A stretch of DNA of 64,000 nt from Orbicella franksi (GCA_964199315.1 OZ116712.1:18972001-19036000); one strand, 5' to 3'; shown: positions 20,044-39,027, numbered from the stretch's first letter. The notes: generated by a model from the sequence alone, not told the origin. Numbers and translations are program-made.

Positions 20044-20048
20044 TAGTT

Positions 20049-20287
20049 AGTAGTATAGGGGAGCGGTTTGAGACCCAACCAATCAGAGCGCGTTATTTGG
20101 GACACGTGACGCGTCTGGACCAATCAGCGTGCAGGATTTTCGGCTCAGGTCAGCGGTTGCACTAATGCTTTTTAGCGAGGTCTGGGGCGAGCTCGGTCAA
20201 AAGGGGACCGCGCGGGGTTGGACGCCAGGACGTGAGGGGCTGGGGACCGGAAGTGACGACAGACCACGTGATCCGTTTTCAAATTTT
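20049..20287 (+). repeat. Left terminal inverted repeat (239 bp)
   Basis: Reverse complement of 42839-43077 with a single mismatch (ggggACCggaag vs ggggAGCggaag). Contains two CCAATCAG, two CACGTG and a CCGGAAGTG motif. Confidence 0.97.
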
Positions 20288-24302: not shown

Positions 24303-24393
24303 GGTGAGACTGATGGGAGGAGCAAAGTCACATTGGTTTTAATGGTGTGAGTCCACCAATAGTAAAAAAGTACTTTTTCAACACGTGAAAAAT

Positions 24394-24465
24394 TGCCCCG
24401 ACCAGGAATCGAACCTGAGTCTTCGCGGCCACAACGCGACGTCTTCACCACTAGACCATCGAAGC
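24394..24465 (-). tRNA. tRNA-His: tRNA-His (GTG), Maverick-encoded
   Basis: GCTTCGA TG GTCT AGTGGTGA AGAC G TCGCG TTGTGGC CGCGA AGAC TCAGG TTCGATT CCTGG TCGGGGC A. All four stems pair (a few G-U), A- and B-boxes are intact, and TTTTT follows 1 nt downstream. Confidence 0.92.
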
Positions 24466-24530
24466 ATGAGCGGTAGGGAACCACGTTTTATAGAGTAGTG
24501 GTTCCCGCTTTTTTTAATGACGTAGGAGTG

Positions 24531-24565
24531 GGGGGGTACCCCCCATCCCCCCTCTGGTGACGTCA
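24531..24565 (-). promoter_or_regulatory. 35-bp promoter-core motif, copy 1 (CRE + G6ATG6TAC6)
   Basis: Reverse complement is identical to 41909-41943. TATAAAA lies on both sides (24486-24492 minus, about 24590 plus). Confidence 0.7.
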
Positions 24566-24627
24566 CGTCACGTGTCTTGATTCCGCGTGTATAAAAATGG
24601 GACGCCTTGGCGGTGGTGATTCGACTG

Positions 24628-24741
24628 ATGAAGCTGGAAGTGAGTATACCATTGGCGAAGCTTACTTTGGAGGTGGACCTATTTGCGCTGACTGTGATTG
24701 GTATTGTGGTGATTGAAGTTTGTCACCATTTAAAGAAATAG
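24628..24741 (+). CDS. Small hydrophobic protein 1 (37 aa, MKLEV family)
   Basis: MKLEVSIPLAKLTLEVDLFALTVIGIVVIEVCHHLKK. Paralogous to the next ORF and downstream of a TATA box. Confidence 0.6.
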   Translation: MKLEVSIPLAKLTLEVDLFALTVIGIVVIEVCHHLKK

Positions 24742-24750
24742 GTGAGTTTG

Positions 24751-24909
24751 ATGAAGCTTGAAGTGACTTTGTCATTTGTGAAGATTACTTTGGAGTTGGA
24801 TTTGGAATTGCTGTTGCTGATTTTTGCGATTGTTTTCATCGGAGTGGTTTTGATTCATACAAGTGGAGTGAATTGCAAAAATGAATACCTTGAATCGATG
24901 CCGTCGTAA
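24751..24909 (+). CDS. Small hydrophobic protein 2 (52 aa, MKLEV family)
   Basis: MKLEVTLSFVKITLELDLELLLLIFAIVFIGVVLIHTSG..., with a single predicted TM helix. Confidence 0.6.
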   Translation: MKLEVTLSFVKITLELDLELLLLIFAIVFIGVVLIHTSGVNCKNEYLESMPS

Positions 24910-24910
24910 G

Positions 24911-25177
24911 ATGACTACTTTGACTCAGTGGGTGAATGAGTGGAAGGAGCGTGAGAAAGAAAATAGCGCGAGTTTGTTATACAATGACTTGCGTAATCTG
25001 TCTCGTTTCATTGGTGCGGTGCTACGTGACATTGACTGTTTGTTCTCGGAGGAGCAGTTAGGCTTTTTGAGGGAGATGCATTTGAAAGAGTTGCGAATGA
25101 ATGTGAACCGTGCTCTTAAAGGCTATAAACATTTGTTTTTTAGCTATGACCAGTCATTGGGATTATTTACCACCTGA
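24911..25177 (+). CDS. Hypothetical protein (88 aa)
   Basis: ATG 1 nt after the previous stop, tightly packed in the plus-strand block. Confidence 0.6.
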   Translation: MTTLTQWVNEWKEREKENSASLLYNDLRNLSRFIGAVLRDIDCLFSEEQLGFLREMHLKELRMNVNRALKGYKHLFFSYDQSLGLFTT

Positions 25178-25478
25178 AATTCAAACGTACATTATTGATT
25201 TGAAGCTGCGACAGGAGCGATTGGATGTCTTGACGTCAGCACGAAAGGGATTGTGCGAAGAAATGAAATTGTACCATTATTTGAAAGAGAAGTGGAGAAT
25301 AGGTCATTTGAGATGTGAGGCTCACTATTGTCGTTTATGTAAGGCTTTTCATTCGAGAGTGTACGGACAATTTCGCGAATATAGGGTGTTGTTAGGTTAC
25401 TCTTTGAAACAAGCGGCAAGTAACGTGACGTCAGCCAGACGTAAGATGTTGAATGAACCTGCTTTTGTTGTGTTGTAG
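25146..25478 (+). CDS. F-box-like paralogue 1 (110 aa)
   Basis: MTSHWDYLPPEIQTYIIDLKLRQE. Clear paralogy with the next two ORFs. Confidence 0.75.
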   Translation: MTSHWDYLPPEIQTYIIDLKLRQERLDVLTSARKGLCEEMKLYHYLKEKWRIGHLRCEAHYCRLCKAFHSRVYGQFREYRVLLGYSLKQAASNVTSARRKMLNEPAFVVL

Positions 25479-25479
25479 A

Positions 25480-25839
25480 ATGACAAGTTATTGGGATTAT
25501 TTACCACCAGAAATTCAAGCGTACATTCTCGATTTGAGACTGCGACAGGAACGAATGGACAGCGTGTCGAACCAACAAAAAGAGTTGTGTGAAATGATTC
25601 GAATGTATCATCGCGTCAAACGTGATTGGGGTCTGGGTCACGTGCGATGTCAACCTTTTCGGTGTTTTATTTGTAATGAAGTGAATTGGTTGAACGCTAA
25701 GACTTTATCACTCACAGACTTTGTCTATCACGAAAAAGTGTATGGGTATTATAACGGTCGAACGGTCTTAATGGGTAATTGTTTGCAACAAGTGTACATG
25801 CAAGAAGTCAAACAAAATTTATCCCTCTTTTTTCCTTAG
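25480..25839 (+). CDS. F-box-like paralogue 2 (119 aa)
   Basis: MTSYWDYLPPEIQAYILDLRLRQE..LCE..W.LGHVRC..C..C. Confidence 0.75.
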   Translation: MTSYWDYLPPEIQAYILDLRLRQERMDSVSNQQKELCEMIRMYHRVKRDWGLGHVRCQPFRCFICNEVNWLNAKTLSLTDFVYHEKVYGYYNGRTVLMGNCLQQVYMQEVKQNLSLFFP

Positions 25840-25842
25840 ACA

Positions 25843-26208
25843 ATGGATATCAAGACCAAAGTGAAATTAAGTCAAGAAGTTGAAAGTTACTGGGATTTGT
25901 TACCCTGGCACATTGTCTCTAAAATTATGAACTTGAAAATCAGACAAGAGTATTTGGACGAGATTGAGAAAGAAAAAAGAAAGAAATTGTGTGAGGAGAT
26001 TAGGAAGTTTTATGAATTGAAAGTAAGATGGGCGATAGGCTCTGTTATGTGTAAACCTTCAATGATGACATGTGGATGCATGGATGCTAAATGGTATGGT
26101 AATTATGTGGATTTACAAGGTAAACGGAGAAGGGCCTTTTTGGCGTTTAATTTGAATCAGGCCTTTGAACGTTCTGATCATATCAAATCATTTTTATTTC
26201 ATAGTTGA
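25843..26208 (+). CDS. F-box-like paralogue 3 (121 aa)
   Basis: SYWDLLPWHIVSKIMNLKIRQE..LCEEI..W.IGSVMC. Confidence 0.72.
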   Translation: MDIKTKVKLSQEVESYWDLLPWHIVSKIMNLKIRQEYLDEIEKEKRKKLCEEIRKFYELKVRWAIGSVMCKPSMMTCGCMDAKWYGNYVDLQGKRRRAFLAFNLNQAFERSDHIKSFLFHS

Positions 26209-26304
26209 TAGTTGATAGGGCGTCTTCCCACCAGGGGAATGGACACATGTCCCACTTGTAAAAAAAGGTTAAAATGGTTATTAAAATGTTTTTTGCAGAA
26301 CAAA

Positions 26305-27087
26305 ATGGCTGCCTTTAATCCTGTGGATCATTCGATCCAATGTGTAGTGTGCTCCAGTTCTGAGATGAAAGACGGTGAAAAGCTCTTCATGTTGGAATGT
26401 TGCAAAGAGGGGGTGCATAACTCCTGTCTAGCGAGACCACCCAACGGAACGCACTTGGTGTGTCCCAAATGTCGCATTGAGACCTGTGCCCATAATCAAA
26501 TCGTACAGAAGGATCACTTCACGGAGAAGGACATGGATCTCGTGGATCTGTGTTTCCTGAAACATCAAGTGGTCTCGCGCATTCCCATGACCCAACAAGA
26601 GATCCATCAACTACGCGTGGCTAGTAACGTGCCCGGGTTGAACGCCCTACGCCACGTCAGTCATCGCGTCTTTTTGACGGGTCTGGTCTTTTGGGTGCCT
26701 CTGAAGAAAAGCGTGTTCTGCGAGTGGGAGGATGTGGCGGCTCGCTTGTCCCTGGGTCTGACCTACAACAACCTCTCTGAGATGCGTTCCCGCTACGATC
26801 TGCGCGTGGAGAGGGATCAGAAAGGGGATGCCTTTCACCACTTTTTGGATCACTTGCTGGAGTGTGCCATCCAGGATGAGAAAGTGGTCGGTCGGACTTG
26901 TCTGGTCAAGACCTGTCGCTGCCCCCTGTGCCCAGAGTGTCAAGGCTTTGCCTCTATCTTTGGGAAGGAGCGTACGTCCAACATAGTGGCCCTTGCCAAC
27001 CGCAGTTATTTTTACGAGCGCGTGGAGAAAGGGATCTACAATAATTTCAGGATGATTTATAATCGTGCTCATAAGAAGAAACCATAA
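26305..27087 (+). CDS. RING-finger protein (260 aa from ATG 26305; frame open from 26212)
   Basis: CVVC-x14-CCKEGVHNSC-x11-CPKC. AATAAA follows near 27125. Confidence 0.75.
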   Translation: MAAFNPVDHSIQCVVCSSSEMKDGEKLFMLECCKEGVHNSCLARPPNGTHLVCPKCRIETCAHNQIVQKDHFTEKDMDLVDLCFLKHQVVSRIPMTQQEIHQLRVASNVPGLNALRHVSHRVFLTGLVFWVPLKKSVFCEWEDVAARLSLGLTYNNLSEMRSRYDLRVERDQKGDAFHHFLDHLLECAIQDEKVVGRTCLVKTCRCPLCPECQGFASIFGKERTSNIVALANRSYFYERVEKGIYNNFRMIYNRAHKKKP

Positions 27088-27131
27088 GTCAAAACACATG
27101 TATCTTTTAATTTCAACATGATTCAATAAAG

Positions 27132-27488
27132 TTACAGTTTCAAACGTTTCTTGGCTTGCATGATGCGTTTCACCACCCTTTCCGTCATGGTCTTCCTACC
27201 GGGTAACCTGTCAATGGCCTTGATCATCTTGGTGTCAGCCTTCCACTTGTCCTGCAGATTCTTGGCACGACTGTAATCGATGTCGTGTTGTTTGGCGAGT
27301 CGGTCCAAACGATTGATGCCAGGATCTCCTCGGGCCAGTCGTTTTTTCAGTTTGGTGCCCGGTCCCATATACTGATAGCCTGGCCAATGAAATTCGATCC
27401 CCGTCTTGCCCAACAGTTTCTGAATGTCTAAACCGTAACCGCGTTGCTTTTTGCGAGTCCTGGTCCTGTTGGCTCTAGTTCTTGCCAT
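27132..27488 (-). CDS. Parvovirus-VP1-type phospholipase A2 domain protein (PLA2X-like, 118 aa)
   Basis: Ca-loop YQYMGPG, catalytic DRLAKQHDIDY, and a basic N-terminus with QRGYG. Confidence 0.88.
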   Translation of the reverse strand: MARTRANRTRTRKKQRGYGLDIQKLLGKTGIEFHWPGYQYMGPGTKLKKRLARGDPGINRLDRLAKQHDIDYSRAKNLQDKWKADTKMIKAIDRLPGRKTMTERVVKRIMQAKKRLKL

Positions 27489-28185
27489 AGCTGAGACGTC
27501 GTTTGCTGGGGTTTTTCCACTCTTCCCAAGGCTTCAGGCGTTCGGCCGCTGTGGGTTTGCGCTTCTTAGGTTTCTTGGCGACTTTCTTGGGACTGTAACC
27601 ACCCTCGTCGTCGTCGTCTTCAATTGATTTAGGATCCAGACCGATGCTCTTTAAAAAGCCTTTCTTGGCTCCGCTCAACACGCTTTTTTTCAAACCACCC
27701 GATTTAGGCTTCTTAGCGCTGGACGTGGGTCGCGGTATGCGACTCGGTCCAGCACTGGAGGCAGCCTTTTTCACAGTCTTGGGTGTTTCGGGTAAGAGTC
27801 GACGGGGTTTGATCCCAGACGGACCCGCGGGTGTGACTACTTCTTGCTTGATCCTGGCGGGGGTTTGACCTTTAATGACTTGTTTCAATAAGTTTTCCAA
27901 TGGAGAGTCCAGGGCTTCTTCATCCGGTGCTGGACCACCCACGCCAGCCTTCGGGACACCTCCCGTACGAATACGTTTGGTCAATCGAGTCTGTTCACGC
28001 GCCAAGGGTTTGACCATCTTGACGGCAATCCCGTCAGGAATGGTGGGATTCCCCAAGATCAATTGTTTTTCTGCGGCCAATCGCCCTGCTTTGTTCAACA
28101 GGGCGCTTTGTGAAATCTGTCCTTTGTAGTAATCTTGCAAACGTTCGAATTCACTGACCGGTACCATCATGACCTCTTCCGTCAT
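27475..28185 (-). CDS. Maverick hypothetical/virion protein (236 aa)
   Basis: Long ORF in the late block. MMVPVSEFERL N-terminus, Pro/Lys-rich C-terminus. Confidence 0.7.
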   Translation of the reverse strand: MTEEVMMVPVSEFERLQDYYKGQISQSALLNKAGRLAAEKQLILGNPTIPDGIAVKMVKPLAREQTRLTKRIRTGGVPKAGVGGPAPDEEALDSPLENLLKQVIKGQTPARIKQEVVTPAGPSGIKPRRLLPETPKTVKKAASSAGPSRIPRPTSSAKKPKSGGLKKSVLSGAKKGFLKSIGLDPKSIEDDDDEGGYSPKKVAKKPKKRKPTAAERLKPWEEWKNPSKRRLSYGKN

Positions 28186-28594
28186 ACTGCAACGCGGTTT
28201 CAAAACAGTCTTGCCAGTAACTTGCTTCTTGACGGGCTTTTTCCAATTTCAATTGCAGACTCTGGACGGTCTCGTTGGGTTTGGCACAGGTCTGGCAGGG
28301 AATGATCACGTCTTCCACGTCGTCTTGGACTCGTATGCAATCGTCACACCCGTGTCCGTATTTTAAAGCCAAATATTCCTGTTCGAGAGCTCTGTATTTT
28401 CGATGCTGACGCTCTTGAACGAGTTTGAGTTGTTCTTCCCTGCGATTGGCTTCTTGTAACAATCCAATGAGCTTGGTCATGTTGTCTTTGATCTCGGTTA
28501 GTTTTCGGTTCTCGCTCACGCGTTCAGGCACCACGTCGATGCCCTGCAAGGGGTAACCCTCAGCGTCTCGACCCGACATGTTCGTAACACTCAT
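28151..28594 (-). CDS. Coiled-coil protein with two CxxC pairs (147 aa)
   Basis: Heptad-like segments flank CDDC...CQTC. Confidence 0.65.
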   Translation of the reverse strand: MSVTNMSGRDAEGYPLQGIDVVPERVSENRKLTEIKDNMTKLIGLLQEANRREEQLKLVQERQHRKYRALEQEYLALKYGHGCDDCIRVQDDVEDVIIPCQTCAKPNETVQSLQLKLEKARQEASYWQDCFETALQYDGRGHDGTGQ

Positions 28595-28883
28595 TCAAAC
28601 CTCTCCAGAAGCCACTCCCTGTTTGAGCCAACAGATGTTGACGCCTCCTCTTCAGCGAATTTCTGCGCTTCCCCACTTCGCGCAACACGTTCTTATGGCG
28701 TTGAAGTTTTCGAAGCGTCTGAGGCTCGACGGGAATTCTCTTTTTCAACAGATTCAAGACCATTTCACTGACCGCGTTGATCTGGTCGGCGTTGGCATGT
28801 TCCAACATCTCTTGACGTTTGAAACGATTGGCTTCTTGGAGAATGCTGGTCAAGAACGGGCGTTGTCGCCGTAATCGATTCAT
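28560..28883 (-). CDS. Conserved Maverick basic core-type protein (107 aa)
   Basis: INAVSEMVLNLLKKRIPV..KL..HK..LR....QTGSGFW pattern recalled from Polinton small conserved proteins. ATGA overlap with the upstream ORF. Confidence 0.7.
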   Translation of the reverse strand: MNRLRRQRPFLTSILQEANRFKRQEMLEHANADQINAVSEMVLNLLKKRIPVEPQTLRKLQRHKNVLREVGKRRNSLKRRRQHLLAQTGSGFWRGLNECYEHVGSRR

Positions 28884-29176
28884 CGTCTCTTTCTGAGTCG
28901 GTAGGAAGGGGTAAAGTCTTTTATGCCCTGAATCGACTCCACCACTTTGACACCCGCGGGAACACGGAACGGGGTCTTGCGTTTTTTCTTGACGGGTTTG
29001 AGGGTAGATTGAAAGGGTATTTTCCGAATGGCTCGTTCCAACTTGGGTCTGTGCTTTTGAACCTGTTTGTCAAAAAGCTTGGTGAACCAGTTCGCCGCCC
29101 CGAACACTTTGTCTCCACCTCGTTGCAGTATCTTGGCTCGGGAGAGCCTGGACAGCTTACCTCGGCGTCTTGTCAT
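28880..29176 (-). CDS. Basic core-type protein (98 aa)
   Basis: Arg/Lys-rich, LQRGG motif. Confidence 0.65.
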   Translation of the reverse strand: MTRRRGKLSRLSRAKILQRGGDKVFGAANWFTKLFDKQVQKHRPKLERAIRKIPFQSTLKPVKKKRKTPFRVPAGVKVVESIQGIKDFTPSYRLRKRR

Positions 29177-29198
29177 GGTTTTTGAATGGGGGTTGGAG

Positions 29199-29540
29199 TC
29201 AAGACCCCGCTTTTATCATCTTAGCCAAGGGTGTCTTGACGGCTGGGATGCGTTTCAATAAACTCAAGAGGGTGGTTCTACGATTGAAACAGATGGGTTT
29301 TTTCTTGGCTTTCTTTCTACGAGTCTTGGTGAATTTGCTCACATCTCCAAACTTGTCTTCGTACCAATGCCTCTTTTTCATTCTTCTTTTCCTATCTTCT
29401 TTGGCTGAAAGGGTGGGAGCTCTCTTGCGTTTCCTGCGCGTGGTGACAGTGGTCGGTAATTCACCGGTGTCAAGGACAGCCATTGGAGCCGGTTGAAGAG
29501 CGACTCTTCTGGCGGGTACTGCTTGTTTTTTTCGGACCAT
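29199..29540 (-). CDS. Basic protein (113 aa)
   Basis: Arg/Lys-rich ORF in the late block. Confidence 0.55.
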   Translation of the reverse strand: MVRKKQAVPARRVALQPAPMAVLDTGELPTTVTTRRKRKRAPTLSAKEDRKRRMKKRHWYEDKFGDVSKFTKTRRKKAKKKPICFNRRTTLLSLLKRIPAVKTPLAKMIKAGS

Positions 29541-29647
29541 GTTGAAAGCACTCGGTTGAGGCGTTTTTTACCAGGTTTTCCGTAGCGTTTTTCCAAATCG
29601 GCTATGACGTTGTCCAAATAGCGATGCCCTCGAAACTGAAGATCCAT
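29378..29647 (-). CDS. Hypothetical protein (89 aa)
   Basis: ATG-initiated ORF that overlaps the next ORF by 163 nt, so one of the two may be partly spurious. Confidence 0.45.
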   Translation of the reverse strand: MDLQFRGHRYLDNVIADLEKRYGKPGKKRLNRVLSTWSEKNKQYPPEESLFNRLQWLSLTPVNYRPLSPRAGNARELPPFQPKKIGKEE

Positions 29648-29690
29648 GAGGTGTCATAGGTGTGGTGACGAATGACTTGGGGTTTTTCAC

Positions 29691-30077
29691 TCATCGCTTT
29701 TTATAGAGCCAAGGTTGTTTGCGATGACGATAGCTGCTTTGAGCCGCACCGGTCAAACCCATGCGTTGGTAATCCTTACGCTTTCCCAATTTGTACCCCA
29801 TTTTGGCTGCACTGGCAAAGATGTTGCCTCCGCCTTGTCGTTTCTTTCGCTTCTTCTTGGTGACGGCTTGCAAAGCTCGTTTGGCGCCGTAGCTGGCGGC
29901 ACCGGAAGCTGCCCCTAAACCCACGGCTTTACCCAGGGCAATGCCGGCCGGCACGAGCGCAGCCAAAGGTAGGACACCGCCCTTCTGTTTCTTCTTACGA
30001 CGTCGTCTTCTCATCATGAGCGCGAGCCCAGCGGTGGTGAGCATGGACGCAGGTAGGTTACCTCCCTTCTGTTTCAT
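29691..30077 (-). CDS. Adenovirus pX/mu-like basic core protein (128 aa)
   Basis: KQKGG twice, poly-Arg, and GGVLPLAALVPAGIALG resembling adenoviral pX GGFLPALIP. Confidence 0.65.
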   Translation of the reverse strand: MKQKGGNLPASMLTTAGLALMMRRRRRKKKQKGGVLPLAALVPAGIALGKAVGLGAASGAASYGAKRALQAVTKKKRKKRQGGGNIFASAAKMGYKLGKRKDYQRMGLTGAAQSSYRHRKQPWLYKKR

Positions 30078-30093
30078 GGTGAACAATGAACCC

Positions 30094-30627
30094 TCATGGA
30101 CTTGGATCGTCTAATTTATGCTCTTTTTGGTAAGGAATGTAACGAAATTTCAGGTCATACTGTTTGACGTAGGTGTCCTTGATGGGTTGGGTCAAATCCG
30201 TGATGGTGTCGTCTATGGTTTGCAATTTCACCAGGAAGCCTTCGAACTCGTCCAAGGGAAAGCCGCGCACGTAGGTTCTCAATTCGATCAAGGTCTTTTC
30301 ATGGGCAGTGAACGCAAAACGACTCATGTCCATCTTGATGGAAAAATTCTTGAAATCGTTCCAACCCTTGACCAAGGTCCCTAAAGCGGTCAAGATGGCC
30401 ACGATGACATGTTGTTCCCAAAGCACACCGATGATCATGCTCAAGGCCATCATGAGTAAAGCCAGTCCATTGAGAAAACAGAACCACGTTTTGAAATGAT
30501 AAAACATTTGTTTCCGATACCACCATTGTCGATGATAATATTTGTACAATCCATCCAATCGCGACAAGGATTCCTCTTCCACACTGTTTCTGTAAGCCCC
30601 GTTGAGTAAACTCACATCGATGGTCAT
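30094..30627 (-). CDS. Two-transmembrane-helix protein (177 aa)
   Basis: Hydrophobic hairpin FLNGLALLMMALSMIIGVLW / VIVAILTALGTLV flanked by charged helices. Confidence 0.75.
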   Translation of the reverse strand: MTIDVSLLNGAYRNSVEEESLSRLDGLYKYYHRQWWYRKQMFYHFKTWFCFLNGLALLMMALSMIIGVLWEQHVIVAILTALGTLVKGWNDFKNFSIKMDMSRFAFTAHEKTLIELRTYVRGFPLDEFEGFLVKLQTIDDTITDLTQPIKDTYVKQYDLKFRYIPYQKEHKLDDPSP

Positions 30628-30633
30628 GGTTAG

Positions 30634-31434
30634 TCAGTTCGAAACACTGCTCGAATTGCGGCTCACTTGGGGTCTTCCTCCGTCTTTGTAGGTGGTCGTG
30701 ATGGTGTTGGTGGTGGTGATACCGGCGATACGTCGTCCTCGAGCCGTTTGTTGCTGATCGTTCAACAACATTTGCAATTGACGTTGTAAACTGTCTTGAT
30801 CCATGCGTGATCTGGGGGTGGAAACAGCACTGCTTTCATCATCGTCATCATCGTCGTCGTCATCATCATCATCATCTCCACCACCACCGCCTCCAGCACC
30901 GCCTCTACCGCCTCTACCACCTCTACCACCTCTACCACCTCCACCACCTCTACCACCTCGACCCCGTCTGGGTTGCTTGCCACCACGTCCCCGTCTGGGT
31001 TGCTTGCCACCCCTGGTAGCCGGTCTCTTGAATCCAACAGTTCCCACGGTGAACGTACGAGCCAGATACCCCCGTCCAGGCGGTGTCGGAGCTCGTCCGG
31101 GTACGTCTCGACGCGTATCCAGACCCGAAGGCCCCGCTCGGGCTGGGGGAGGACTCGCCCCAACGCCTGCGACACTCCCTGTGGGGCGGGGACTACGTCG
31201 CGGCGTACTGCTAGCCACGGGTCCTGCGGTGCCTGCGCCAGCAGGGGGTGTATTCCGTAGGGGTGACCTAGTGGTCGTACCCACGCCCGGACTCAAACTT
31301 TGAATGTACTGACTCAAAAAGTCGTCGTTGTAAGCGTAGCTCAAGTCGATGTCCTCCAGCGGTGAAAGAGGGGAAGGTAAAGCTTGAGCGATGAGACTGG
31401 GCGAGGTGCCCACGCCAGCTGGAGAGGTGCTCAT
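30634..31434 (-). CDS. Low-complexity protein with RGG repeats and poly-Asp tract (266 aa)
   Basis: S/T/P-rich, (GGKQPRRGR)x2, GGRGG repeats, about 13 Asp. ATGA overlap with the upstream ORF. Confidence 0.7.
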   Translation of the reverse strand: MSTSPAGVGTSPSLIAQALPSPLSPLEDIDLSYAYNDDFLSQYIQSLSPGVGTTTRSPLRNTPPAGAGTAGPVASSTPRRSPRPTGSVAGVGASPPPARAGPSGLDTRRDVPGRAPTPPGRGYLARTFTVGTVGFKRPATRGGKQPRRGRGGKQPRRGRGGRGGGGGRGGRGGRGGRGGAGGGGGGDDDDDDDDDDDDDESSAVSTPRSRMDQDSLQRQLQMLLNDQQQTARGRRIAGITTTNTITTTYKDGGRPQVSRNSSSVSN

Positions 31435-31682
31435 TGTAGAAGGTCGGTGTATTTCTTTTCTCGAGCCACCAATCTTCGTGCCAACAACAGTTTGTATTGA
31501 ATGTGATCGGTCAAATTCTCTTGGTTATATGCGTTTAACACGGTTTGTACCTCGCGTGTACCGCTGCACTGCAAGATTTGTCTCATGGGTTCGCACTCGA
31601 CATTGCGCTCATGCATGTAGTCCAATTGATTTTTGCAAATCGCTAGGAATCGCGGGAACCACTCGACTTCACTGCGCAGCAT
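31431..31682 (-). CDS. Hypothetical protein (83 aa)
   Basis: ATG 2 nt after the ATPase stop. Its own stop overlaps the next ATG. Confidence 0.6.
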   Translation of the reverse strand: MLRSEVEWFPRFLAICKNQLDYMHERNVECEPMRQILQCSGTREVQTVLNAYNQENLTDHIQYKLLLARRLVAREKKYTDLLQ

Positions 31683-31684
31683 CT

Positions 31685-32332
31685 TCACTTCAACTGATGC
31701 ATTCGCATGCAGCCCTCTTCTTTTAGTAGATGACTGAGAATCCGCTCATCGTCGCGGCTTTTAGGGTGTAAATCCAACAAGAGATAGCCAAACGGACGGT
31801 CGGTGACCTTTCGAAAGGTCTCTTGCACATCCTGCCATCGCGACGGAAAGGCTTGCAACAATAAATTTCGCATCCCCAGTTGATCTCGAGGGTTCTTGAA
31901 TCCCACGATGTAATGGGCATTTCTAGAGATGCTCTTGGAAAATTTACCGGGTGGAAACATGTCTTGCGATAAATAGATCACTGTGATGTTGCGATGGTGG
32001 GAATCTTTGGTGAAGAGATCCAAGACCCGTTTGTCGTTCCCTCCTTCTTCCATCAAATCGTCCATCACCAGTAAGCCGCCCTTGGGAAACCAGATGGGTA
32101 AGAGATCCGAGTCGGGAATGCCGTGCTGGAATTTCACGCCATACGCTTTCAGGGGTTTGAATCCGTCTTGCCAGGAACCGTAACAGTAATAAATGCTATT
32201 GGGTGGGGTCTCGAACAGATCGAGATTGTCCATCAATAATTGGGTGGTGAACACCGTTTTCCCCGATCCCGACGGACCCACTACCATCATGCTGGAAGGC
32301 GTGTTGAATCGAAAGGCTTGACGTCGTTCCAT
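31685..32332 (-). CDS. A32/FtsK-family DNA packaging ATPase (215 aa; upstream in-frame ATG at 32374)
   Basis: Walker A GPSGSGKT, Walker B LLVMDD, SHHRNITVIYLSQ, SRNAHY. Confidence 0.95.
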   Translation of the reverse strand: MERRQAFRFNTPSSMMVVGPSGSGKTVFTTQLLMDNLDLFETPPNSIYYCYGSWQDGFKPLKAYGVKFQHGIPDSDLLPIWFPKGGLLVMDDLMEEGGNDKRVLDLFTKDSHHRNITVIYLSQDMFPPGKFSKSISRNAHYIVGFKNPRDQLGMRNLLLQAFPSRWQDVQETFRKVTDRPFGYLLLDLHPKSRDDERILSHLLKEEGCMRMHQLK

Positions 32333-32490
32333 GGTTGAGTCCCATATGGATGAGACAAAAGGAGTGCGTTTCATATATAAACCGCATGGGTCCCTTATGG
32401 AAAAGCGTGAGGTCCGGATAGACAGGTTTATCTGTCCTGGGCGCGGGAGTTAACACGCACTTGTCTTGACACTTGACTTCACATTTTTTA

Positions 32491-33057
32491 TTACAATAAA
32501 TGTCTTACACCGCAACGAGATGTACACGTGTCTTGCTCGTAATCACATCGGCAGACTTGCTCCCAATTTAACTCTTTATGTATCAATTTTTTTAACATTT
32601 GTCCCACTTTATGATCGTTTTGTACGTAATCGTGTGGACTGAAACGACGTAGAAACGTGTTCATGTCATGTCCTTTGGATCGATCGATCAAAAACATCAA
32701 CGCGTAATCGCCGCAACTCTGACTGTACAGCGATTGCAAACTCTTGCCGTTGTGGACATTGAACTTCCAATGGTGATCCAACCACCTCTGTAAAGGTTCC
32801 GTGGTCAGGTAGGTGTCCAAGGGTAGTGCGTAACTGTCCATGATCTCGCAAACGTTATTACACGTCCATAGCGCAATCCAATGCCGACCCGGTTGGCCTT
32901 GAGGGTCCGTGTTGACAATGTAACCCACGGGTCCTTTCTTCTGGGGTTTCTCGGGTAAACGATCGCAAGGCACCGTACCGTAAAAATAGGGTTTCAAACT
33001 GGGTTGACTCCTAGCCAACACGTCCAACTGCACATTGTTCAAACTGACTTTTTCCAT
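32491..33057 (-). CDS. Adenain-like (C5) cysteine maturation protease (188 aa)
   Basis: NTDPQGQPGRHW (His), MDSYA (Asp), LQSLYSQSCG (oxyanion Gln, catalytic Cys). Confidence 0.95.
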   Translation of the reverse strand: MEKVSLNNVQLDVLARSQPSLKPYFYGTVPCDRLPEKPQKKGPVGYIVNTDPQGQPGRHWIALWTCNNVCEIMDSYALPLDTYLTTEPLQRWLDHHWKFNVHNGKSLQSLYSQSCGDYALMFLIDRSKGHDMNTFLRRFSPHDYVQNDHKVGQMLKKLIHKELNWEQVCRCDYEQDTCTSRCGVRHLL

Positions 33058-34439
33058 TACACTTGGTACACGTCGTATTGCACGGTCTTGTTGCTATTGA
33101 TCTCCAAGAGATTTTCAAATTCGGCGTAGAGGATGGCCGTGACGTTGGCACCTTGATCGGCTCCAAAGTCGAACACCAACCGCAACTCACCGCTCAGCTT
33201 GGGGTTCAACACTGGACTGTTGAGGCAACCGTTGGCGGCGTTCTCAAATACAAACAGCGTGCATCCTTTCCCTCGTCCCCAATCTTTGGCTCTCACCATG
33301 TTTCCTTTACTCTTGCACAAACTTCCCGTGGCTTGTAGAAATTGTCTATAGCCTCTCATGTCTCTGCTTCCATTGGTATGGAGCAATTCCAAGACTTCAT
33401 AGGGATAGGCTTCTCCTCTCACCAATTGTTTGATGCTGGTCAGATTAAATTGCTGGAAGGTGAAGGGATACTCATCGTCGGCCCCGTTGAAGGCTGTGGA
33501 AGCCACCAATCCCACCACCAGCATGTTGGGTAGCCGGTTCTGGAACGGATTGGTGATTTCATAGTGTAACTCGTTTTGCGTGATGTTGTAGGTCCGGATC
33601 TCGCTTCTGACCGTGGGATAGCTTACCACATTTCTTCCACTACCCATATCATTCATCAATTCTCGGTAGACAGACGGGTTAAGTCTGACTTGGCAAAGAT
33701 ACAGTTTCACTTTGATGTCTCGTGAATCCATACGGAAGGCCACAGCACCCTCCATTTTCCAACTCCACACAGCCGGTGAATTGAAGTACATCTGAATCCC
33801 AATCTGCACATTGGGTATCAAGAGTTTGCTGAGGTGAAACACTTCAATGTGGGGAACGAAACTGTAAACGCGCGTCTGACTGTCCGTGCCAGTGGCTTGG
33901 GCTCGGAGTTCACGCACCAGGTCTTGTCTATCCGGGGGTAAAGCTCTGAAATCGGCATGTGCCAGATTCAGTTGAGTGGCTGTCAAAGTATCGGGCACAT
34001 CGACCTGATTGAACCAGCCTTGAGGTCTCAAAATGGTGTCTCCATCGTCTCTGTCAAAATTCAGTAAGGTTTCGATGTAGGCTTTGTAATGGTAGGTGTC
34101 CGTCTGAGGACTGATGAGCGTCCCATTGAGTCGCACACTGATCTGTTTGAACAGGGAGTGGGCAATGTTGTTGACCAAAAAGGTGTTTTCGGCGGCCACG
34201 GCATCACCTCCCGCTGCTTTCTGCAATTTCCATTCCAGTTCGAAGTAACTGCGTGACAAATCGATGTAATCTTCTTGAGGATCGATCTGAAAATCGATGG
34301 GGTTGATGCCCGTGGTGAAAGGATGTACGGGTACCATCCGATAACTCGAGATACTCAGATCCGTGGGCGGCACCCGAAACAAATTCAACATGGGGTTCTT
34401 GACCCCCGCCGAACCAGGGAGAGGGACAATGTCCGTCAT
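33057..34439 (-). CDS. Major capsid protein (double jelly-roll, 460 aa)
   Basis: YIDLSRSYFEL, NNIAHSLFKQI..NG, YHYKAYIETLL and LPNMLVVGLV..FNG..PF.FQ.FNL, typical of Polinton MCP. Sits next to the protease. Confidence 0.92.
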   Translation of the reverse strand: MTDIVPLPGSAGVKNPMLNLFRVPPTDLSISSYRMVPVHPFTTGINPIDFQIDPQEDYIDLSRSYFELEWKLQKAAGGDAVAAENTFLVNNIAHSLFKQISVRLNGTLISPQTDTYHYKAYIETLLNFDRDDGDTILRPQGWFNQVDVPDTLTATQLNLAHADFRALPPDRQDLVRELRAQATGTDSQTRVYSFVPHIEVFHLSKLLIPNVQIGIQMYFNSPAVWSWKMEGAVAFRMDSRDIKVKLYLCQVRLNPSVYRELMNDMGSGRNVVSYPTVRSEIRTYNITQNELHYEITNPFQNRLPNMLVVGLVASTAFNGADDEYPFTFQQFNLTSIKQLVRGEAYPYEVLELLHTNGSRDMRGYRQFLQATGSLCKSKGNMVRAKDWGRGKGCTLFVFENAANGCLNSPVLNPKLSGELRLVFDFGADQGANVTAILYAEFENLLEINSNKTVQYDVYQV

Positions 34440-34624
34440 CGTCGTCGTTTAGGTCCTCGTCGGTGTCTTCTCTTGAGAGCGCTCCGCACCCAAGTGGGGT
34501 CTAGACCTCGTCTGCGGTGGGGTAAGAAGGTACCCCCTTTTTGTAGTCTTCTGCCTCGCGTCAACTCACTGACAATGGGTGGAATGCGTCGAACGCGTCT
34601 CGAATAAATGGGATTCATATTCAT
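34436..34624 (-). CDS. Small Arg-rich core-type protein (62 aa)
   Basis: LQKGG motif and ATGA overlaps at both ends. Confidence 0.65.
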   Translation of the reverse strand: MNMNPIYSRRVRRIPPIVSELTRGRRLQKGGTFLPHRRRGLDPTWVRSALKRRHRRGPKRRR

Positions 34625-34872
34625 TTTCCAAAAATGTCGTCCAACTTGCGTTTGGCCGCTCGGTTGATTTCGCTCAAGGCTTTGCGTTTAATGGCTCGTC
34701 TCCCGCCGGACTTCACGCCTCGAATACCACCTGCAATGTTAGGTAATCCCATGGGTCCACCCTTTTTTAAACCTTGCCATCCTTCTCGTAAACTGGATCC
34801 CGAAAAGTCTCGCAAGAAACCTCGTCCCATTTGACCGTCGGGTTTGAAACGCGTCAAAGCGCCGCCTCTCAT
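34621..34872 (-). CDS. Small basic core-type protein (83 aa)
   Basis: MRGG, QMGRG, and ATGA overlaps at both ends. Confidence 0.65.
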   Translation of the reverse strand: MRGGALTRFKPDGQMGRGFLRDFSGSSLREGWQGLKKGGPMGLPNIAGGIRGVKSGGRRAIKRKALSEINRAAKRKLDDIFGK

Positions 34873-35894
34873 TCTTGTTTGAAGTGTAGCGTGACGATGG
34901 TATTGCCTGCTCCGAATTTCGTCAATTCCCCAGTGGTCTCCGCGACTTGTGTCTCGATAATGTCGATGTAATCTTTGCGTACCGGAATATATTGAACATG
35001 GAGGGGTTCAAAATACTGGAAGCCTTTGCCTTCTCGTTGGTAATTGACTTCTCGTAACAGATCCGTGACTTGATTCCCCACCACCCCGCTGGTCCCCACA
35101 TCCGAATACACCATCAGCGAACGCGAGGTGGAGCCCGTCACGTTCTTGAACGAGGTGTTGAGGTTGATGAACCGCCAGTTAAGGAAGGTGGTCAACTTCA
35201 CTCTCTTGCCATTTCCGTGCAATTCCCAATAGGGTTCACCTGTTCTGGGGTTGATGTCAGCGGCCGCTGGCACTTTCAGTTCTTCGGTGTTCAGTTCCAT
35301 GGACAGATTGGGACCAATCTCCACATTACTACCATTCTTCTTGAACCATCCCATGTCAATACCCAGTTCCAGGTTGACATAGAATTGGGGGTAAGAATGA
35401 CCATTGTAGAGCCTCCTGTGGATATCCGTGTTATCGAAGACAAAATCGTCGCCTTCGAATCGGAAATTCAACAGATTGCTTTTCTTGGTGGTTGGATCCG
35501 AGAAGAGGTAACCCGCTCGAAGCCTCTTTTCTATCACGGTTGTGTCAAAAAAGGTCTTGACGGTCTTCATGAACTCCACTCCTGTCAGATTCGACAAATC
35601 GTCCGCGCGAAGGTGTTCGGGCTTGAAATCACCCCCATCGATATTGTGTCGATTTAGCAATTGTATGGTGTCTCTCACATACCAATACCCTTCAAACATG
35701 ACCTCGTCCCCTTGCAACAAGGGAGGGACTTGACTCTTGGGGTCTGGTAACGAGATACTGCTGAGACCCACTTTCCAATTGGCGCCTTCCATTTTCAAAG
35801 GATGAGGGAGTCGAATCTTGAAATGATTGGATTTGTTCTCGGGATACTCGGTCTTGCTACTGTGGCTCGGTAGACTCACGTAAAAATCCGTCAT
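34869..35894 (-). CDS. Minor capsid protein/penton, copy A (341 aa)
   Basis: FYVSLPS.SS..YPEN....F...L....W.VGL and LMVYSD..VGNQVTDLLREV..Y.PV....IETQV....G..F....VTLHF. Confidence 0.9.
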   Translation of the reverse strand: MTDFYVSLPSHSSKTEYPENKSNHFKIRLPHPLKMEGANWKVGLSSISLPDPKSQVPPLLQGDEVMFEGYWYVRDTIQLLNRHNIDGGDFKPEHLRADDLSNLTGVEFMKTVKTFFDTTVIEKRLRAGYLFSDPTTKKSNLLNFRFEGDDFVFDNTDIHRRLYNGHSYPQFYVNLELGIDMGWFKKNGSNVEIGPNLSMELNTEELKVPAAADINPRTGEPYWELHGNGKRVKLTTFLNWRFINLNTSFKNVTGSTSRSLMVYSDVGTSGVVGNQVTDLLREVNYQREGKGFQYFEPLHVQYIPVRKDYIDIIETQVAETTGELTKFGAGNTIVTLHFKQE

Positions 35895-36972
35895 GTTTAA
35901 AATGCAAAGTGACCGTCGTCACTCCCTCAGGAAAGTTCACCAATGCTCCGTCGTTCTCGGCCACCTGCGTCTCGATAATGTCAAACACGTCGCTGCGCAC
36001 CGGTAAATATTGGATGTGGTGGGGTTCAAAGGTCATGCGGTTCGGATCGTGCGGCACTTCTCTCAAGAGATCGGTGACTTGATTCCCCATGACGGTACTT
36101 TGCGCCACGTTGCAATAGACATACAGGGGAGTTCGAAGCGTCTCAGGGACAGTCACGTTACCACCATAGTGCTGATCGTAGAGCTCGTCCAGATAGTCGA
36201 AGCGCCAATTGCAGTAGGGACTGAGCTGTAAGGATCCATCGTCCGTGATGTTCCAAAAATTCGTGGAATGAGCGTTGCCTTGATCCTTCCAATCGAGTTT
36301 GAAAGTGGGTACCACATCGTCTTTGAAGTATTTAATCACGTGATGACTCAATTTGTAATCGGCAATGCCCGTCTTTTCCACCCACATGAGTTTCCTGACC
36401 AATTCAGGACCAAACCAGATTTTAGGACGCAATCGCACTGTGTCACTAGGATTTTCATTGAGGAAGGTATCGCTCTTGTCGATGATTAAGGAATCCCCTT
36501 CCCAACGAAAGACAACGTAGTACTTCTTCCCGTCAGGAGTGCGTAGACTTTCTTTTTCTTTTTCCATGAAGTGCGTCAGACGATCTTGGTAACGCGCCAC
36601 CAAGTATTTCATGAGCGATTTCCCACTCGTGACTTTGACTCGGTCCTCGTGCAGATCAGACCCCTTGACGGTAAAAGTGTTACGGTAGGCATTAGGAATC
36701 CATCTACCATCGGACAAAAGTATGAAACTTTCCATACTCCATTTAAATTGTATCAGTATCTCATCGTCTTCGAAGAGGTGGGGTCGATGCGTCGACTGTT
36801 CATAACGTCGTAAAGGTGGGGGTGGGTAAGAAATACTGCTCAAACCCACTTTCCAGCCTTCCTCTTTCAATTGGATCTGGTAAGGCAAACGGTTCTTGAA
36901 ACTGTTGGGATTATTGAAGGGGAATTCCGTGGTACTGGAACCGCTGATCAATTGGACGTAAAACTCCTTCAT
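35857..36972 (-). CDS. Minor capsid protein/penton, copy B (371 aa)
   Basis: Same N- and C-terminal penton motifs as copy A, with a different central insert. Confidence 0.9.
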   Translation of the reverse strand: MKEFYVQLISGSSTTEFPFNNPNSFKNRLPYQIQLKEEGWKVGLSSISYPPPPLRRYEQSTHRPHLFEDDEILIQFKWSMESFILLSDGRWIPNAYRNTFTVKGSDLHEDRVKVTSGKSLMKYLVARYQDRLTHFMEKEKESLRTPDGKKYYVVFRWEGDSLIIDKSDTFLNENPSDTVRLRPKIWFGPELVRKLMWVEKTGIADYKLSHHVIKYFKDDVVPTFKLDWKDQGNAHSTNFWNITDDGSLQLSPYCNWRFDYLDELYDQHYGGNVTVPETLRTPLYVYCNVAQSTVMGNQVTDLLREVPHDPNRMTFEPHHIQYLPVRSDVFDIIETQVAENDGALVNFPEGVTTVTLHFKHDGFLRESTEPQ

Positions 36973-38051
36973 CTCGTCTTGACCAAGGCTCCTTTCTCAA
37001 TCCACGTGTCGTATTTGTTTGGCCACCCTTTCCACCGAACCAAGACTTTATTCCCTTTGCGTTTGACGATCTTTTCCACACGAAACAGATCGTCGCTCTT
37101 CACCGTCACTTTCTGCAAATCCTGCGCGTAAAACGTACCACTCAAAGGCGTACCGTCCCACTCCTTGATCTTATAGGTAGGTATCACACCCGACACCACA
37201 CGTGCCACCACAAACACTTCTTCGGTCCAACCGGGTAAATACCCTTTCTTGAACAGGCGGTATTTCTTATTCAATCGCACCCGATCCCCCACTTTCAACT
37301 CGGGCCGTACGCGTTTGGCTTGCAGACGATCCGCGTACAGCGTCTTCCACACTTGCTCTTCGTTCCCCAGGTCGACTTTCTCGGGTGCCATCTTGATACT
37401 GCGGTGGTAGGAACGGTTGTATCCCGTCACCAAATCCTTCAAGACGGGTAAATAACTGAACGTGTTCTTGATCGTAAAATAGCGGTACATGCGTTTCTTC
37501 AACGTGCGATTGAATCGTTCGATCACACTGGCTTTGGTATCGCCGCTGGTGGAAAAATGACGAATGTCTTTTCGCGTCATCAAGGCTTGAAAGGTCCTGT
37601 TGTAAAATTCTTTCCCGTCGTCGGTCTGCAACTTGCGAGGGATCCGACCCCCACTGCGTTTCAAAATTTTTTCGAAGGCGGCTGTCACGTCCTTACCCGT
37701 CTTGGACTTGACCGGTTCCACCCAAGCGTACTTGGACAACACGTCCAACACCGTCAACAGGTACTTGTACCCTCGATTCGATTTGGCAATGTTCCCCACT
37801 TCGATGAGATCCGCCACCCATTGTTCGTCCATACCGTAGACCATGACCGGTACCGTACGAAAACGACGGCGGGTGGGTTTGTGAAGCGTGTAGCCCAAAC
37901 TGGCTTCCAACCGCTGGCGTACCGGTCCAATGGGTAAGCCTCGGGCTTTGGCGAAACGCGTCACGCCACCCAGACTTCCCGGGACACTGGGATCCTCGTA
38001 GGCCCGCAGCAAATTGGCATACCGATCCACCTTCTTCTTTTTCTTACTCAT
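36969..38051 (-). CDS. int: Retroviral-like (c-clade) integrase with C-terminal chromodomain (360 aa)
   Basis: YEDPSVPGSLGG, DDE triad (WVADL, LQTDDGKEF, IERFNRTLK), chromodomain-like VEKIV...VLVRWKGWPNKYDTWI. Confidence 0.95.
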   Translation of the reverse strand: MSKKKKKVDRYANLLRAYEDPSVPGSLGGVTRFAKARGLPIGPVRQRLEASLGYTLHKPTRRRFRTVPVMVYGMDEQWVADLIEVGNIAKSNRGYKYLLTVLDVLSKYAWVEPVKSKTGKDVTAAFEKILKRSGGRIPRKLQTDDGKEFYNRTFQALMTRKDIRHFSTSGDTKASVIERFNRTLKKRMYRYFTIKNTFSYLPVLKDLVTGYNRSYHRSIKMAPEKVDLGNEEQVWKTLYADRLQAKRVRPELKVGDRVRLNKKYRLFKKGYLPGWTEEVFVVARVVSGVIPTYKIKEWDGTPLSGTFYAQDLQKVTVKSDDLFRVEKIVKRKGNKVLVRWKGWPNKYDTWIEKGALVKTR

Positions 38052-38311
38052 AATGTCGACAATCGACACAGCGCTTGTCTAATCAGCTCGGGGTGTTTTC
38101 GTCTTATGATAGAGTACCAGACGAGTGACAGGGGTTGTCGTTTCAACCACAATATGAAGACCACGAAACGCCAGACGTTCTCTTCGACATGCGTCTCCAA
38201 AAACACCTGTTCGGGGTCAAACGCCATCAACGAAGGAATGGGATCGTTCCTTTCATACTGGGCATATAAAAGCTCGCAGCGCTCGCACAGACTATACCAC
38301 GCACTCGCCAT
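38048..38311 (-). CDS. Hypothetical protein (87 aa)
   Basis: ATG at 38311. Its stop overlaps the integrase ATG (ATGA). Confidence 0.6.
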   Translation of the reverse strand: MASAWYSLCERCELLYAQYERNDPIPSLMAFDPEQVFLETHVEENVWRFVVFILWLKRQPLSLVWYSIIRRKHPELIRQALCRLSTL

Positions 38312-38363
38312 GCTGACCAAAAATGATTTTTTATTTTTCACATGACTGTTCTTATACAAAAAA

Positions 38364-38436
38364 GGACTAAACCAGGATTCGAACCTGGGACCTTTGGGTT
38401 ATGAGCCCAACGCGCTAACCACTACACCATTTAGTC
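38364..38436 (-). tRNA. tRNA-Met: tRNA-Met (CAT), Maverick-encoded
   Basis: GACTAAA TG GTGT AGTGGTTA GCGC G TTGGG CTCATAA CCCAA AGGTC CCAGG TTCGAAT CCTGG TTTAGTC C. Perfect acceptor, anticodon and T stems, A/B boxes, and TTTTTT directly after. Confidence 0.93.
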
Positions 38437-39027
38437 ATCCTCGTTCATCAAACAGTGATTCAAACTATTTACTAGGTCTCTCTCCGTCATCAGTTCCACC
38501 AGTAAGTCCTCCATTTTTTCAATCAGTTCTCTGAAATACGAAGGCGTCCCCAATGAAATCGGGCGGTTCAGTTTGTCGCTCAGTCTCACAGCGATATCTC
38601 GGGCGTAGGTCAGGGGCTCCACCATCTTCTTGATCTTCTGTCTCATCATGAAGGTCAAACAAGACGTGGCCATCAGACAGAACCGGTTCTTCATTCGGGT
38701 CGGGGGAACGATGGCTGGCACAAAACGAATGACATCCAATTCCTTGATGTAGACCATGGAGTACCAATCGATGGTGAATAGAAAGGTTCGACGCACTTGA
38801 GATTTCAGTAAAGGGAGAATCTGCCATCCCCATTCAGGACGTCGACGGAGGAGTTCAGGAATGGTCCACTCGTGCTCGGGTTTACCGTAAAACAAAATGT
38901 CAAACACCAACATATCATGGACCCCTTCGTCTTCATCGAGGCAACCCAAAGGCGAGACCTGAAAGCCGCACACCGACCCGATCAATTCCACGATCTCGTT
39001 GCTGTTACTGTACAACACGGTCAACAT
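38431..39027 (-). CDS. Hypothetical protein (198 aa)
   Basis: ATG 39027 downstream of CCAAT- and TATA-like motifs (about 39060-39100). Confidence 0.7.
   Translation of the reverse strand: MLTVLYSNSNEIVELIGSVCGFQVSPLGCLDEDEGVHDMLVFDILFYGKPEHEWTIPELLRRRPEWGWQILPLLKSQVRRTFLFTIDWYSMVYIKELDVIRFVPAIVPPTRMKNRFCLMATSCLTFMMRQKIKKMVEPLTYARDIAVRLSDKLNRPISLGTPSYFRELIEKMEDLLVELMTERDLVNSLNHCLMNEDD

Follow-up and report, generated by a model that had tools for sequence, protein, structure and literature searches.

A coral Maverick with tRNA-His and tRNA-Met genes that its virus lineage may have maintained

Introduction

Polinton-like viruses (PLVs) and virophages are integrating double-stranded DNA (dsDNA) elements of about 20 kb that belong to the same broad virus assemblage as the Mavericks, also called Polintons. 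They carry one or a few tRNAs as sporadic, lineage-specific cargo, among which histidine is prominent. A 2025 survey listed 558 tRNA calls in approximately 8,300 PLV and virophage genomes, including tRNA-His in PLVs of the cryptophytes Rhodomonas lacustris and Storeatula, and codon compensation was suggested for them without a test of synteny, constraint or compensatory change (PMC12220804). A paper on adintoviruses also flags predicted tRNAs in certain dsDNA viruses of intermediate size whose replicases are of other kinds (PMC8502044). Full-text literature searches found no report of tRNA genes in animal Mavericks, and tRNA is nowhere mentioned in a survey of vertebrate Mavericks. Here we describe a tRNA-His and a tRNA-Met gene inside a Maverick found in a stretch of 64,000 nucleotides from the coral Orbicella franksi (GCA_964199315.1 OZ116712.1:18972001-19036000), referred to below as the window. 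An earlier note on this DNA had treated such carriage as out of the ordinary; with hundreds of tRNAs reported in PLVs and virophages, histidine included, it is less unusual than that note implied (PMC12220804).

The comparison with these relatives also brings out differences. PLVs and virophages have protist hosts and are mostly without the pair of protein-primed family B DNA polymerase (pPolB) and rve integrase, whereas the element described here is an animal-type Maverick with pPolB, an integrase with rve core and chromodomain, terminal inverted repeats (TIRs) and a target-site duplication (TSD). For its tRNAs, syntenic conservation, constraint and compensatory change are documented below.

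Phages and giant viruses (Nucleocytoviricota, chloroviruses) likewise carry tRNA genes that are accessory, patchy in distribution and often placed at the junctions of gene modules, and these use the processing and charging enzymes of the host, as is proposed here. Their tRNAs usually come in clusters that match differences in codon usage, whereas this Maverick has only His and Met, with one anticodon each, and its genes are by their anatomy of the eukaryotic RNA polymerase III (Pol III) type. Among dsDNA viruses of animals, the tRNA-miRNA-encoded RNAs (TMERs) of murid gammaherpesvirus 68 and the virus-associated (VA) RNAs of adenovirus are products of small Pol III genes with internal A and B boxes. 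The tRNA-like parts of TMERs, which are not known to be aminoacylated, are joined to pre-miRNA hairpins, and VA RNAs do not have the cloverleaf form. The Maverick genes differ from both: each is a full canonical cloverleaf closed at once by a T run, and no downstream hairpin precedes the terminator.

The tRNA genes and their carrier

In the 64-kb window ARAGORN predicted two tRNA genes and no others. They are a tRNA-His (gtg) at 24393-24466 and a tRNA-Met (cat) at 38364-38436, each encoded on the minus strand. A comparison with all Rfam families by Infernal gave two matches only, both to RF00005 (gathering score 29) and both full-length (model positions 1-71). The element and the features of the two genes are as follows.

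20049-43077, minus strand: complete Maverick/Polinton, recognised by its TIRs, composition, gene content and 6-bp TSD
20049-20287: left TIR, 239 nt, 100% complementary to 42839-43077
42839-43077: right TIR, 239 nt, 100% complementary to the left TIR
24394-24465, minus strand: tRNA-His, anticodon GTG at 24430-24432 (Infernal 61.7 bits, E 5.9e-11; ARAGORN)
24388-24392, minus strand: run of five T (T5), one base past tRNA-His and resembling a Pol III terminator; a T run is also present in the relatives L107-L109 and L073
24486-24492, minus strand: TATAAAA box, 21-27 nt upstream of tRNA-His; TATAAA is conserved in L107-L109
38364-38436, minus strand: tRNA-Met, anticodon CAT at 38401-38403 (Infernal 68.3 bits, E 9.1e-13; ARAGORN)
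38358-38363, minus strand: run of six T (T6), immediately past the discriminator of tRNA-Met

In tRNA-His the A box lies at 24448-24458 and the B box at 24405-24415; the corresponding positions in tRNA-Met are 38419-38429 and 38375-38385. CCA is encoded in neither gene. Both have U8, A14, G18-G19, the G15:C48 pair, G53, T54, C56 and C61, and by this anatomy both appear to be eukaryotic nuclear genes of the Pol III type. The tRNA-His is of the eukaryotic type in which G-1 is not encoded: it has a GUG anticodon, the discriminator at 24394 is A (A73), and position -1 (24466) is T. In eukaryotes the G-1 of tRNA-His is added post-transcriptionally by Thg1. Minimum-free-energy folding gave a cloverleaf for tRNA-Met and an alternative fold for tRNA-His; since such folds are usual for unmodified tRNA sequences, this result was not weighed against the tRNA call.

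The carrier is a Maverick by its pPolB, rve integrase, TIRs and 6-bp TSD, a perfect CTAGTT at 20043-20048 and 43078-43083. The element is 23 kb in size, the majority of its genes and both tRNAs are on the minus strand, and its G+C content is about 0.50, compared to about 0.40 in the flanks. Each of the hallmark genes is one open frame that aligns end to end with its relatives, and no stops or frameshifts were counted. Because the TIRs are 100% identical, the TSD is perfect and the hallmark open reading frames (ORFs) are open, the element can be described as a young and apparently intact Maverick. The earlier note, which had proposed two complete His-GTG and Met-CAT genes at these positions between the TIRs of a Maverick, with intact A and B boxes and oligo-T terminators, is thus borne out by ARAGORN and Infernal, by the pPolB, the rve-chromo integrase, the TIRs and the TSD, and by direct reading of the sequence.

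Neighborhoods of the two genes

Five protein-coding genes adjoin the two tRNAs or belong to the transcription units next to them.

20292-24302, minus strand: pPolB, 1336 aa, a single open frame (Pfam PF03175, E 4.2e-40)
24881-25177, plus strand: ORF of 98 aa (p98), divergent from tRNA-His and pPolB; conserved beside His-family tRNAs in relatives
36969-38069, minus strand: integrase, 366 aa, with rve core and C-terminal chromodomain (PF00665, E 1.1e-14; PF00385, 2.1e-05; homologs)
38048-38311, minus strand: ORF of 87 aa (o87) with its ATG at 38311, or of 103 aa (o103) if read from a TTG at 38359, between tRNA-Met and integrase
38431-39027, minus strand: ORF of 198 aa (o198), with its TAA stop at 38431-38433, inside tRNA-Met

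The tRNA-Met is placed between o198 and the 87-aa ORF that precedes the integrase. The stop codon of o198 coincides with bases 4-6 of the tRNA, in the 5′ acceptor strand, and this overlap has been kept in all five sister elements that cover the site. Past the T6 run there is TATAAG at 38351-38356 (TATAAAA in the sisters), followed by AATAAA at 38330-38335. The tRNA-His lies in the divergent region between p98 and pPolB, and the ATG of pPolB is 91 nt downstream of it.

Some further signals were seen in the divergent region. A CRE-like ACGTCA and an A-rich run, about 50 nt upstream of tRNA-His, are conserved in the sisters L107-L109, and the p98/pPolB-tRNA-His promoter region (24530-24570) contains a G6-TA-C7 palindrome at 24530-24544 and a TGACGTGACGTCA motif at 24558-24570. 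The TATA box upstream of tRNA-His is flanked by the arms of a 9-bp inverted repeat, but this repeat is not conserved in the same sisters and was rejected as a feature.

Distribution in related elements

A metagenome scan with the integrase yielded 80 loci. Exact look-ups brought in a relative assembled in Logan (L018-L026), three loci that cover the p98/pPolB junction (L107-L109) and a locus of Oculina patagonica (L113). The window is the only contig that spans both tRNA slots. In the slot between o198 and o103-integrase, a tRNA-Met of the same family was found in each of the five sisters that cover it (L027, L028, L029, L030 and L080), the integrases of which are 86-96% identical to that of the window. 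Outside the window's clade a tRNA occupies this slot at one of 33 slot-covering loci. The p98/pPolB slot contains tRNA-His in three of three slot-covering sisters (L107-L109), with a single difference in the D loop; their pPolB N-termini are 91-97%, and their ATPases 92%, identical to those of the window. Other lineages that cover the region upstream of pPolB (the L018 type, L092 and L113 of Oculina) have no tRNA there. Since the same slots are filled despite flanks that differ by 7-16% in nucleotides, the tRNAs predate the divergence of the sisters.

The same tRNA families are found at other places in more distant Mavericks. Met-family genes lie between protease and ATPase in L039 and L098 (integrase 69% identical). 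L073 has a His-family gene between its o198-like and o103-like genes, encoded on the opposite strand. Further His-family genes lie beside a p98 homolog in L052/L053, L063 and L069. The last of these (integrase 63% identical) has a His and Met pair, at L069:200-271 and 2069-2140 on the minus strand. The tRNA genes of relatives in these slots score 47.7-72.1 bits on RF00005, and between different slots homology stops at the tRNA borders. The majority of relatives have no tRNA, in keeping with the earlier note's view that tRNAs are not standard Maverick cargo. That note had attached importance to the placement of each gene just upstream of a block for genome maintenance. The adjacency itself is correct, with His before pPolB and Met before the 87-aa ORF and integrase, but such placement is not conserved, given that members of the same families elsewhere lie between protease and ATPase, on the opposite strand or in an intron.

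The intron is a putative spliceosomal one of about 106-108 nt, filled by a His-family tRNA in one lineage; the regions concerned are L052:1592-1730, the same in L053, L063:3222-3360 and L069:172-310 (all minus strand). Exon 1 consists of ATG plus nine codons and is followed by a GTAAGC donor, the tRNA, a pyrimidine tract of 27-29 nt and AG; exon 2, of about 98 aa, continues in phase in all three distinct copies of this lineage. Homologs of exon 2 in L041, L059, L070, L091 and L102 have no tRNA upstream. On the L059 contig there is a tRNA-Asp(GTC) at 3801-3872 (minus strand), about 700 nt past the last recognizable Maverick gene. It was considered as an occupant of the same intron slot as the His family and rejected, the homologous exon being about 700 nt away.

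Short-word BLASTN found no degraded tRNA remnants in the loci that were negative by ARAGORN, nor did Rfam in L018 and L032, and neither the window nor some 600 kb of related loci contained an extra tRNA copy away from Maverick genes. Within these sequences there is no sign of a tRNA-derived short interspersed nuclear element, in which a tRNA-related head would be joined to a body and tail of other origin in many dispersed copies: homology stops at the tRNA borders and the T run follows immediately. In L018:1-8240 (integrase 69% identical) the genes are ordered differently, as pPolB precedes the integrase module and shares its strand. The promoter of this pPolB contains several CCAAT-type boxes and a TATAAAA that lies 45 nt ahead of the ATG, but it is without a tRNA.

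Constraint and covariation

Among six clade-A copies of tRNA-Met, seven of 73 columns are variable (0.096). In the same six copies the variable fraction is 0.16-0.17 for whole neighboring coding regions, 0.29 for third codon positions (o198 and integrase) and 0.32 for the adjacent spacer, so that some 21 variable columns would be expected in the tRNA at the third-position rate. The tRNA-His of the window is identical to those of L107-L109 at 71 of 72 positions, whereas identity is 0.89-0.91 in the spacer, 0.93 where pPolB begins and 0.56 in the intergenic DNA further upstream.

Standard pairs occupy 98.4% of the cloverleaf cells in the Met family (nine sequences) and 98.1% in the His family (five sequences), whereas in controls with slid partners 25-58% were paired, and 25-51% in those of the Met family. 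In the Met family five pairs have changed on both sides, a number reached by one of 500 shuffles; within the family proper these are 6:67, from A-U to G-C, and 50:64, from C-G to U-A. The His family has compensatory changes at three pairs, 7:66, 28:42 and 30:40. These sets are small and the sequences related, and they give moderate support to the view that compensatory change keeps the tRNA stems. The U3-G70 and U4-G69 pairs are invariant in all five aligned His-family genes and are present in L107-L109 as well, the first five acceptor bases are identical in Met clades A and B, and the anticodon arm is nearly invariant. The earlier note had suggested long selection within the virus and had proposed a screen of other Mavericks at syntenic positions. 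The occupied slots in five of five and three of three sisters, the lower variation of the tRNAs relative to their flanks and the compensatory changes between lineages all support that suggestion directly. Selection on the tRNAs is best supported, on these comparisons, in the window's own clade; in other lineages, or in individual endogenous copies, it may have lapsed.

Identity of the tRNA-Met

The tRNA-Met has G1:C72, three G:C pairs in the anticodon stem, an elongator-type T loop with T54 (TTCGAAT) and C73. Like the eukaryotic initiator, it closes the anticodon stem with three G:C pairs in a row (29-31 with 39-41). Two of the three sequence features that define the initiator are absent: in place of A1:U72 there is G1:C72, and in place of A54 and A60 there are T54 and U60. 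It is therefore outside the definition of a eukaryotic initiator. The norm is A73, and a C73 would be uncommon in a cytosolic tRNA-Met of any kind.

The 25-nt anticodon arm is matched exactly in tRNA-Met genes of 16 contigs in IMG/VR from giant viruses and phages, several of which have the A54/A60 T loop of eukaryotic initiators or the acceptor end of bacterial initiators. As a generic initiator-type arm, shared with 16 unrelated genes, it was rejected as a marker of the family. The anticodon arm of tRNA-His had no match in IMG/VR. The second tRNA of L069 is an initiator-like tRNA-Met with the A54/A60 T loop and the three G:C pairs, but it has G1:C72 and one acceptor mismatch; its D arm is nearly matched by that of the tRNA-Met in L039 and L098. 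There are hints in these sequences that the Maverick tRNA-Met may be descended from an initiator tRNA.

How the tRNAs may function

The best explanation, to which we assign a probability of roughly 0.55, is that tRNA-His and tRNA-Met are accessory genes maintained by the virus lineage, which would be transcribed by host Pol III and the products of which would act in trans. Host Pol III would transcribe both from their internal A and B boxes and stop at the T5 and T6 runs. The transcripts would be matured by the RNase P, RNase Z and CCA-adding enzyme of the host, Thg1 would supply G-1 of tRNA-His, and the histidyl- and methionyl-tRNA synthetases would charge the products, which could then top up or replace the cell's pools of these tRNAs while the genes of the element are expressed. 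It is by inference that we have the genes transcribed, their products processed and charged, and the element profiting from them. Tops among such mechanisms in simplicity would be tRNA supply, because the genes have the anatomy of autonomous Pol III units. As a single anticodon serves each of His and Met, the gain would lie in the amount of tRNA or in withstanding its depletion, and not in the correction of codon bias.

Several observations weigh against this explanation. With one anticodon per amino acid, codon bias, the explanation commonly given for viral tRNAs, is not applicable, and the ORFs of the element contain an unremarkable 2.9% His and 2.6% Met overall (4.6% His in pPolB); an argument from codon or amino-acid demand was not adopted, the content being ordinary. 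The tRNA-Met is atypical: it has C73 (U73 in L039 and L098), its acceptor stem is rich in A-U pairs, its D stem contains two G-U pairs, and its anticodon stem is of the initiator type although the rest of the body resembles an elongator. Its charging and use are uncertain for that reason. Distribution is patchy: 65 of the 80 loci selected by integrase, many of them short, are without a tRNA, as are L018 and L113. All relatives were retrieved through Maverick proteins, so that the sampling covers Maverick contexts only. Individual copies have changes in the anticodon or the core. By one base change each, the syntenic Met-family gene at L030:2829-2901 has CCT in place of CAT and reads as Arg, and the His-family gene at L052/L053:1622-1694 has GTT in place of GTG and reads as Asn; these may be either decay of endogenous copies or shifts of anticodon. 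L063 has lost G53-C61, C56 is changed in L069, and the tRNAs of the L052/L063/L069 lineage are 0.875-0.93 identical compared to 0.94-0.97 for the adjacent exon. L027 and L028 have one stem mismatch each.

Some of these facts would be expected if the genes were neutral passengers, that is, host tRNA-His and tRNA-Met genes captured by recombination, possibly repeatedly, and hitch-hiking, with an apparent conservation that reflects young copies or gene conversion with host genes. Between different slots only the tRNA itself is common and the flanks are unrelated, as independent captures would leave them; the patchy distribution, the anticodon or core mutations in several copies and the faster evolution of the intron-hosted tRNA relative to its exon point the same way. 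Passengers, however, would not readily account for slots that are filled in five of five and three of three sisters across the 7-16% divergence of flanking genes, nor for a variable fraction in tRNA-Met some three times lower than at third codon positions and in the spacer. Distant Mavericks also share signatures (the His U3-G70/U4-G69 pairs in five members, the acceptor bases of Met clades A and B), and the pairing of His with Met recurs in L069. We consider neutral carriage unlikely, while giving it more credence than the alternatives that follow. The placement of both genes at junctions of transcription units suggests another role, in which binding sites for TFIIIC and Pol III serve in cis as chromatin barriers or insulators, or assist neighboring Pol II promoters, and the RNA is irrelevant. 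The conserved TATA box of the o87/integrase unit is within 2 nt of the T run of tRNA-Met, tRNA-His lies in the divergent p98/pPolB promoter region with its conserved TATAAA 21-27 nt upstream, and clade A retains both boxes, A and B, undamaged. A barrier would require these boxes alone, yet compensatory changes keep the stems, and the tRNA-less relatives L018, L032 and L113 have the same gene junctions. Position and orientation vary between lineages while the RNA sequence, anticodon arm and stems are retained; this argues against any position-dependent role and favors a product that would act in trans, since an insulator or promoter would not require a nearly invariant anticodon arm. A role in cis is rated as somewhat less probable than neutral carriage.

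It can also be asked whether the tRNAs act as parts of longer RNAs. The overlap with the o198 stop and the intron-hosted copies show, as far as gene layout can, that tRNA sequences would also be part of Pol II transcripts: the o198 frame ends within tRNA-Met and the closest AATAAA comes only past that gene, so that the mRNA of o198 must extend into, and probably through, the tRNA. Embedded in the 3′ untranslated region of o198, in the 5′ region of pPolB and, in relatives, in an intron, the tRNAs might be processing points for RNase P and RNase Z, sources of tRNA-derived small RNAs or decoys of sensors, and not decoding tRNAs. The intron of about 107 nt in L052, L063 and L069, with its GTAAGC donor, pyrimidine tract, AG and preserved phase, would suit such a role, and the C73 and the initiator/elongator hybrid character of tRNA-Met would fit an RNA that need not be charged. 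Cleavage by RNase P at the 5′ end of tRNA-Met, on the other hand, would remove the o198 stop and thus damage the mRNA rather than mature it. Autonomous Pol III units are indicated by the T5 and T6 runs straight after the tRNAs and by A and B boxes that are intact, each neighboring gene has a TATA box of its own, and the anticodons of clade A are conserved. We hold signals or decoys at the RNA level to be improbable, a little more so than a role in cis. Equally improbable in our estimate is a reading in which the pair serves as a specific counter-measure and not for supply in general: a tRNA-Met derived from an initiator, together with tRNA-His, would keep the mRNAs of the element translatable in an infection in which the host restricted or cleaved these tRNAs, or the two might serve as decoys, and in one lineage the tRNA would have been made the core of a spliceosomal intron, with delivery by a Pol II transcript as a possibility. 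The initiator-type anticodon arm and the D arm of L039/L098, close to that of the second tRNA of L069, can be cited for it. The possible roles listed in the earlier note are speculative.

Other features of the element and the window

Three more genes of the element are candidates for the capsid and morphogenesis module of Mavericks.

31685-32374, minus strand: candidate A32-like packaging ATPase, 229 aa (weak PF04665 match below the cut-off; conserved in relatives)
32491-33057, minus strand: candidate adenovirus-type cysteine protease, 188 aa (weak PF00770 match below the cut-off; conserved in relatives)
33057-34439, minus strand: candidate major capsid protein, 460 aa (homologs named 'F54H12.2-like' in Oculina patagonica)

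Pfam gave no match for the capsid candidate, but its homologs number in the hundreds, and of these the named ones are the 'F54H12.2-like' proteins of the stony coral O. patagonica; no relatives of it were found in IMG/VR. ORFs with GRF and RING zinc fingers are also encoded by the element. Downstream of the integrase (34869-36972, minus strand) there are ORFs of 341 and 371 aa that are mutual paralogs, with about 33% identity in cross-hits, and L052 and L069 apparently have three such genes in tandem. Small plus-strand ORFs, p122, p128 and p121 (window 25110-26208; L107:945-1644), cross-match each other in relatives, which suggests a tandem family of paralogs adjoining p98.

Outside the Maverick, on its right, inverted arms of 2092 nt that are 99% complementary and 1106 nt apart (window 44647-49936) are probably another transposable element. 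At 6894-7938 two adjacent pairs of inverted repeats (88 nt at 90% and 63 nt at 94%) surround about 750-870 nt, and may represent a small TIR element of the type of miniature inverted-repeat transposable elements.

Significance

Mavericks are usually treated as giant transposons or as fossil viruses of animals. The presence of constrained tRNA genes of their own in one coral lineage would be another trait held in common with free-living viruses, and the two tRNAs can serve as an easily recognized sequence marker of Maverick lineages that were active in recent times. Since only His and Met are carried, with one anticodon each, an explanation by codon bias is unlikely, and it can be tested whether in cnidarian cells the pools of these tRNAs are limiting or come under attack. 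The retention of the two genes points to an interaction with host translation in an animal lineage whose virus-host biology is almost unknown.

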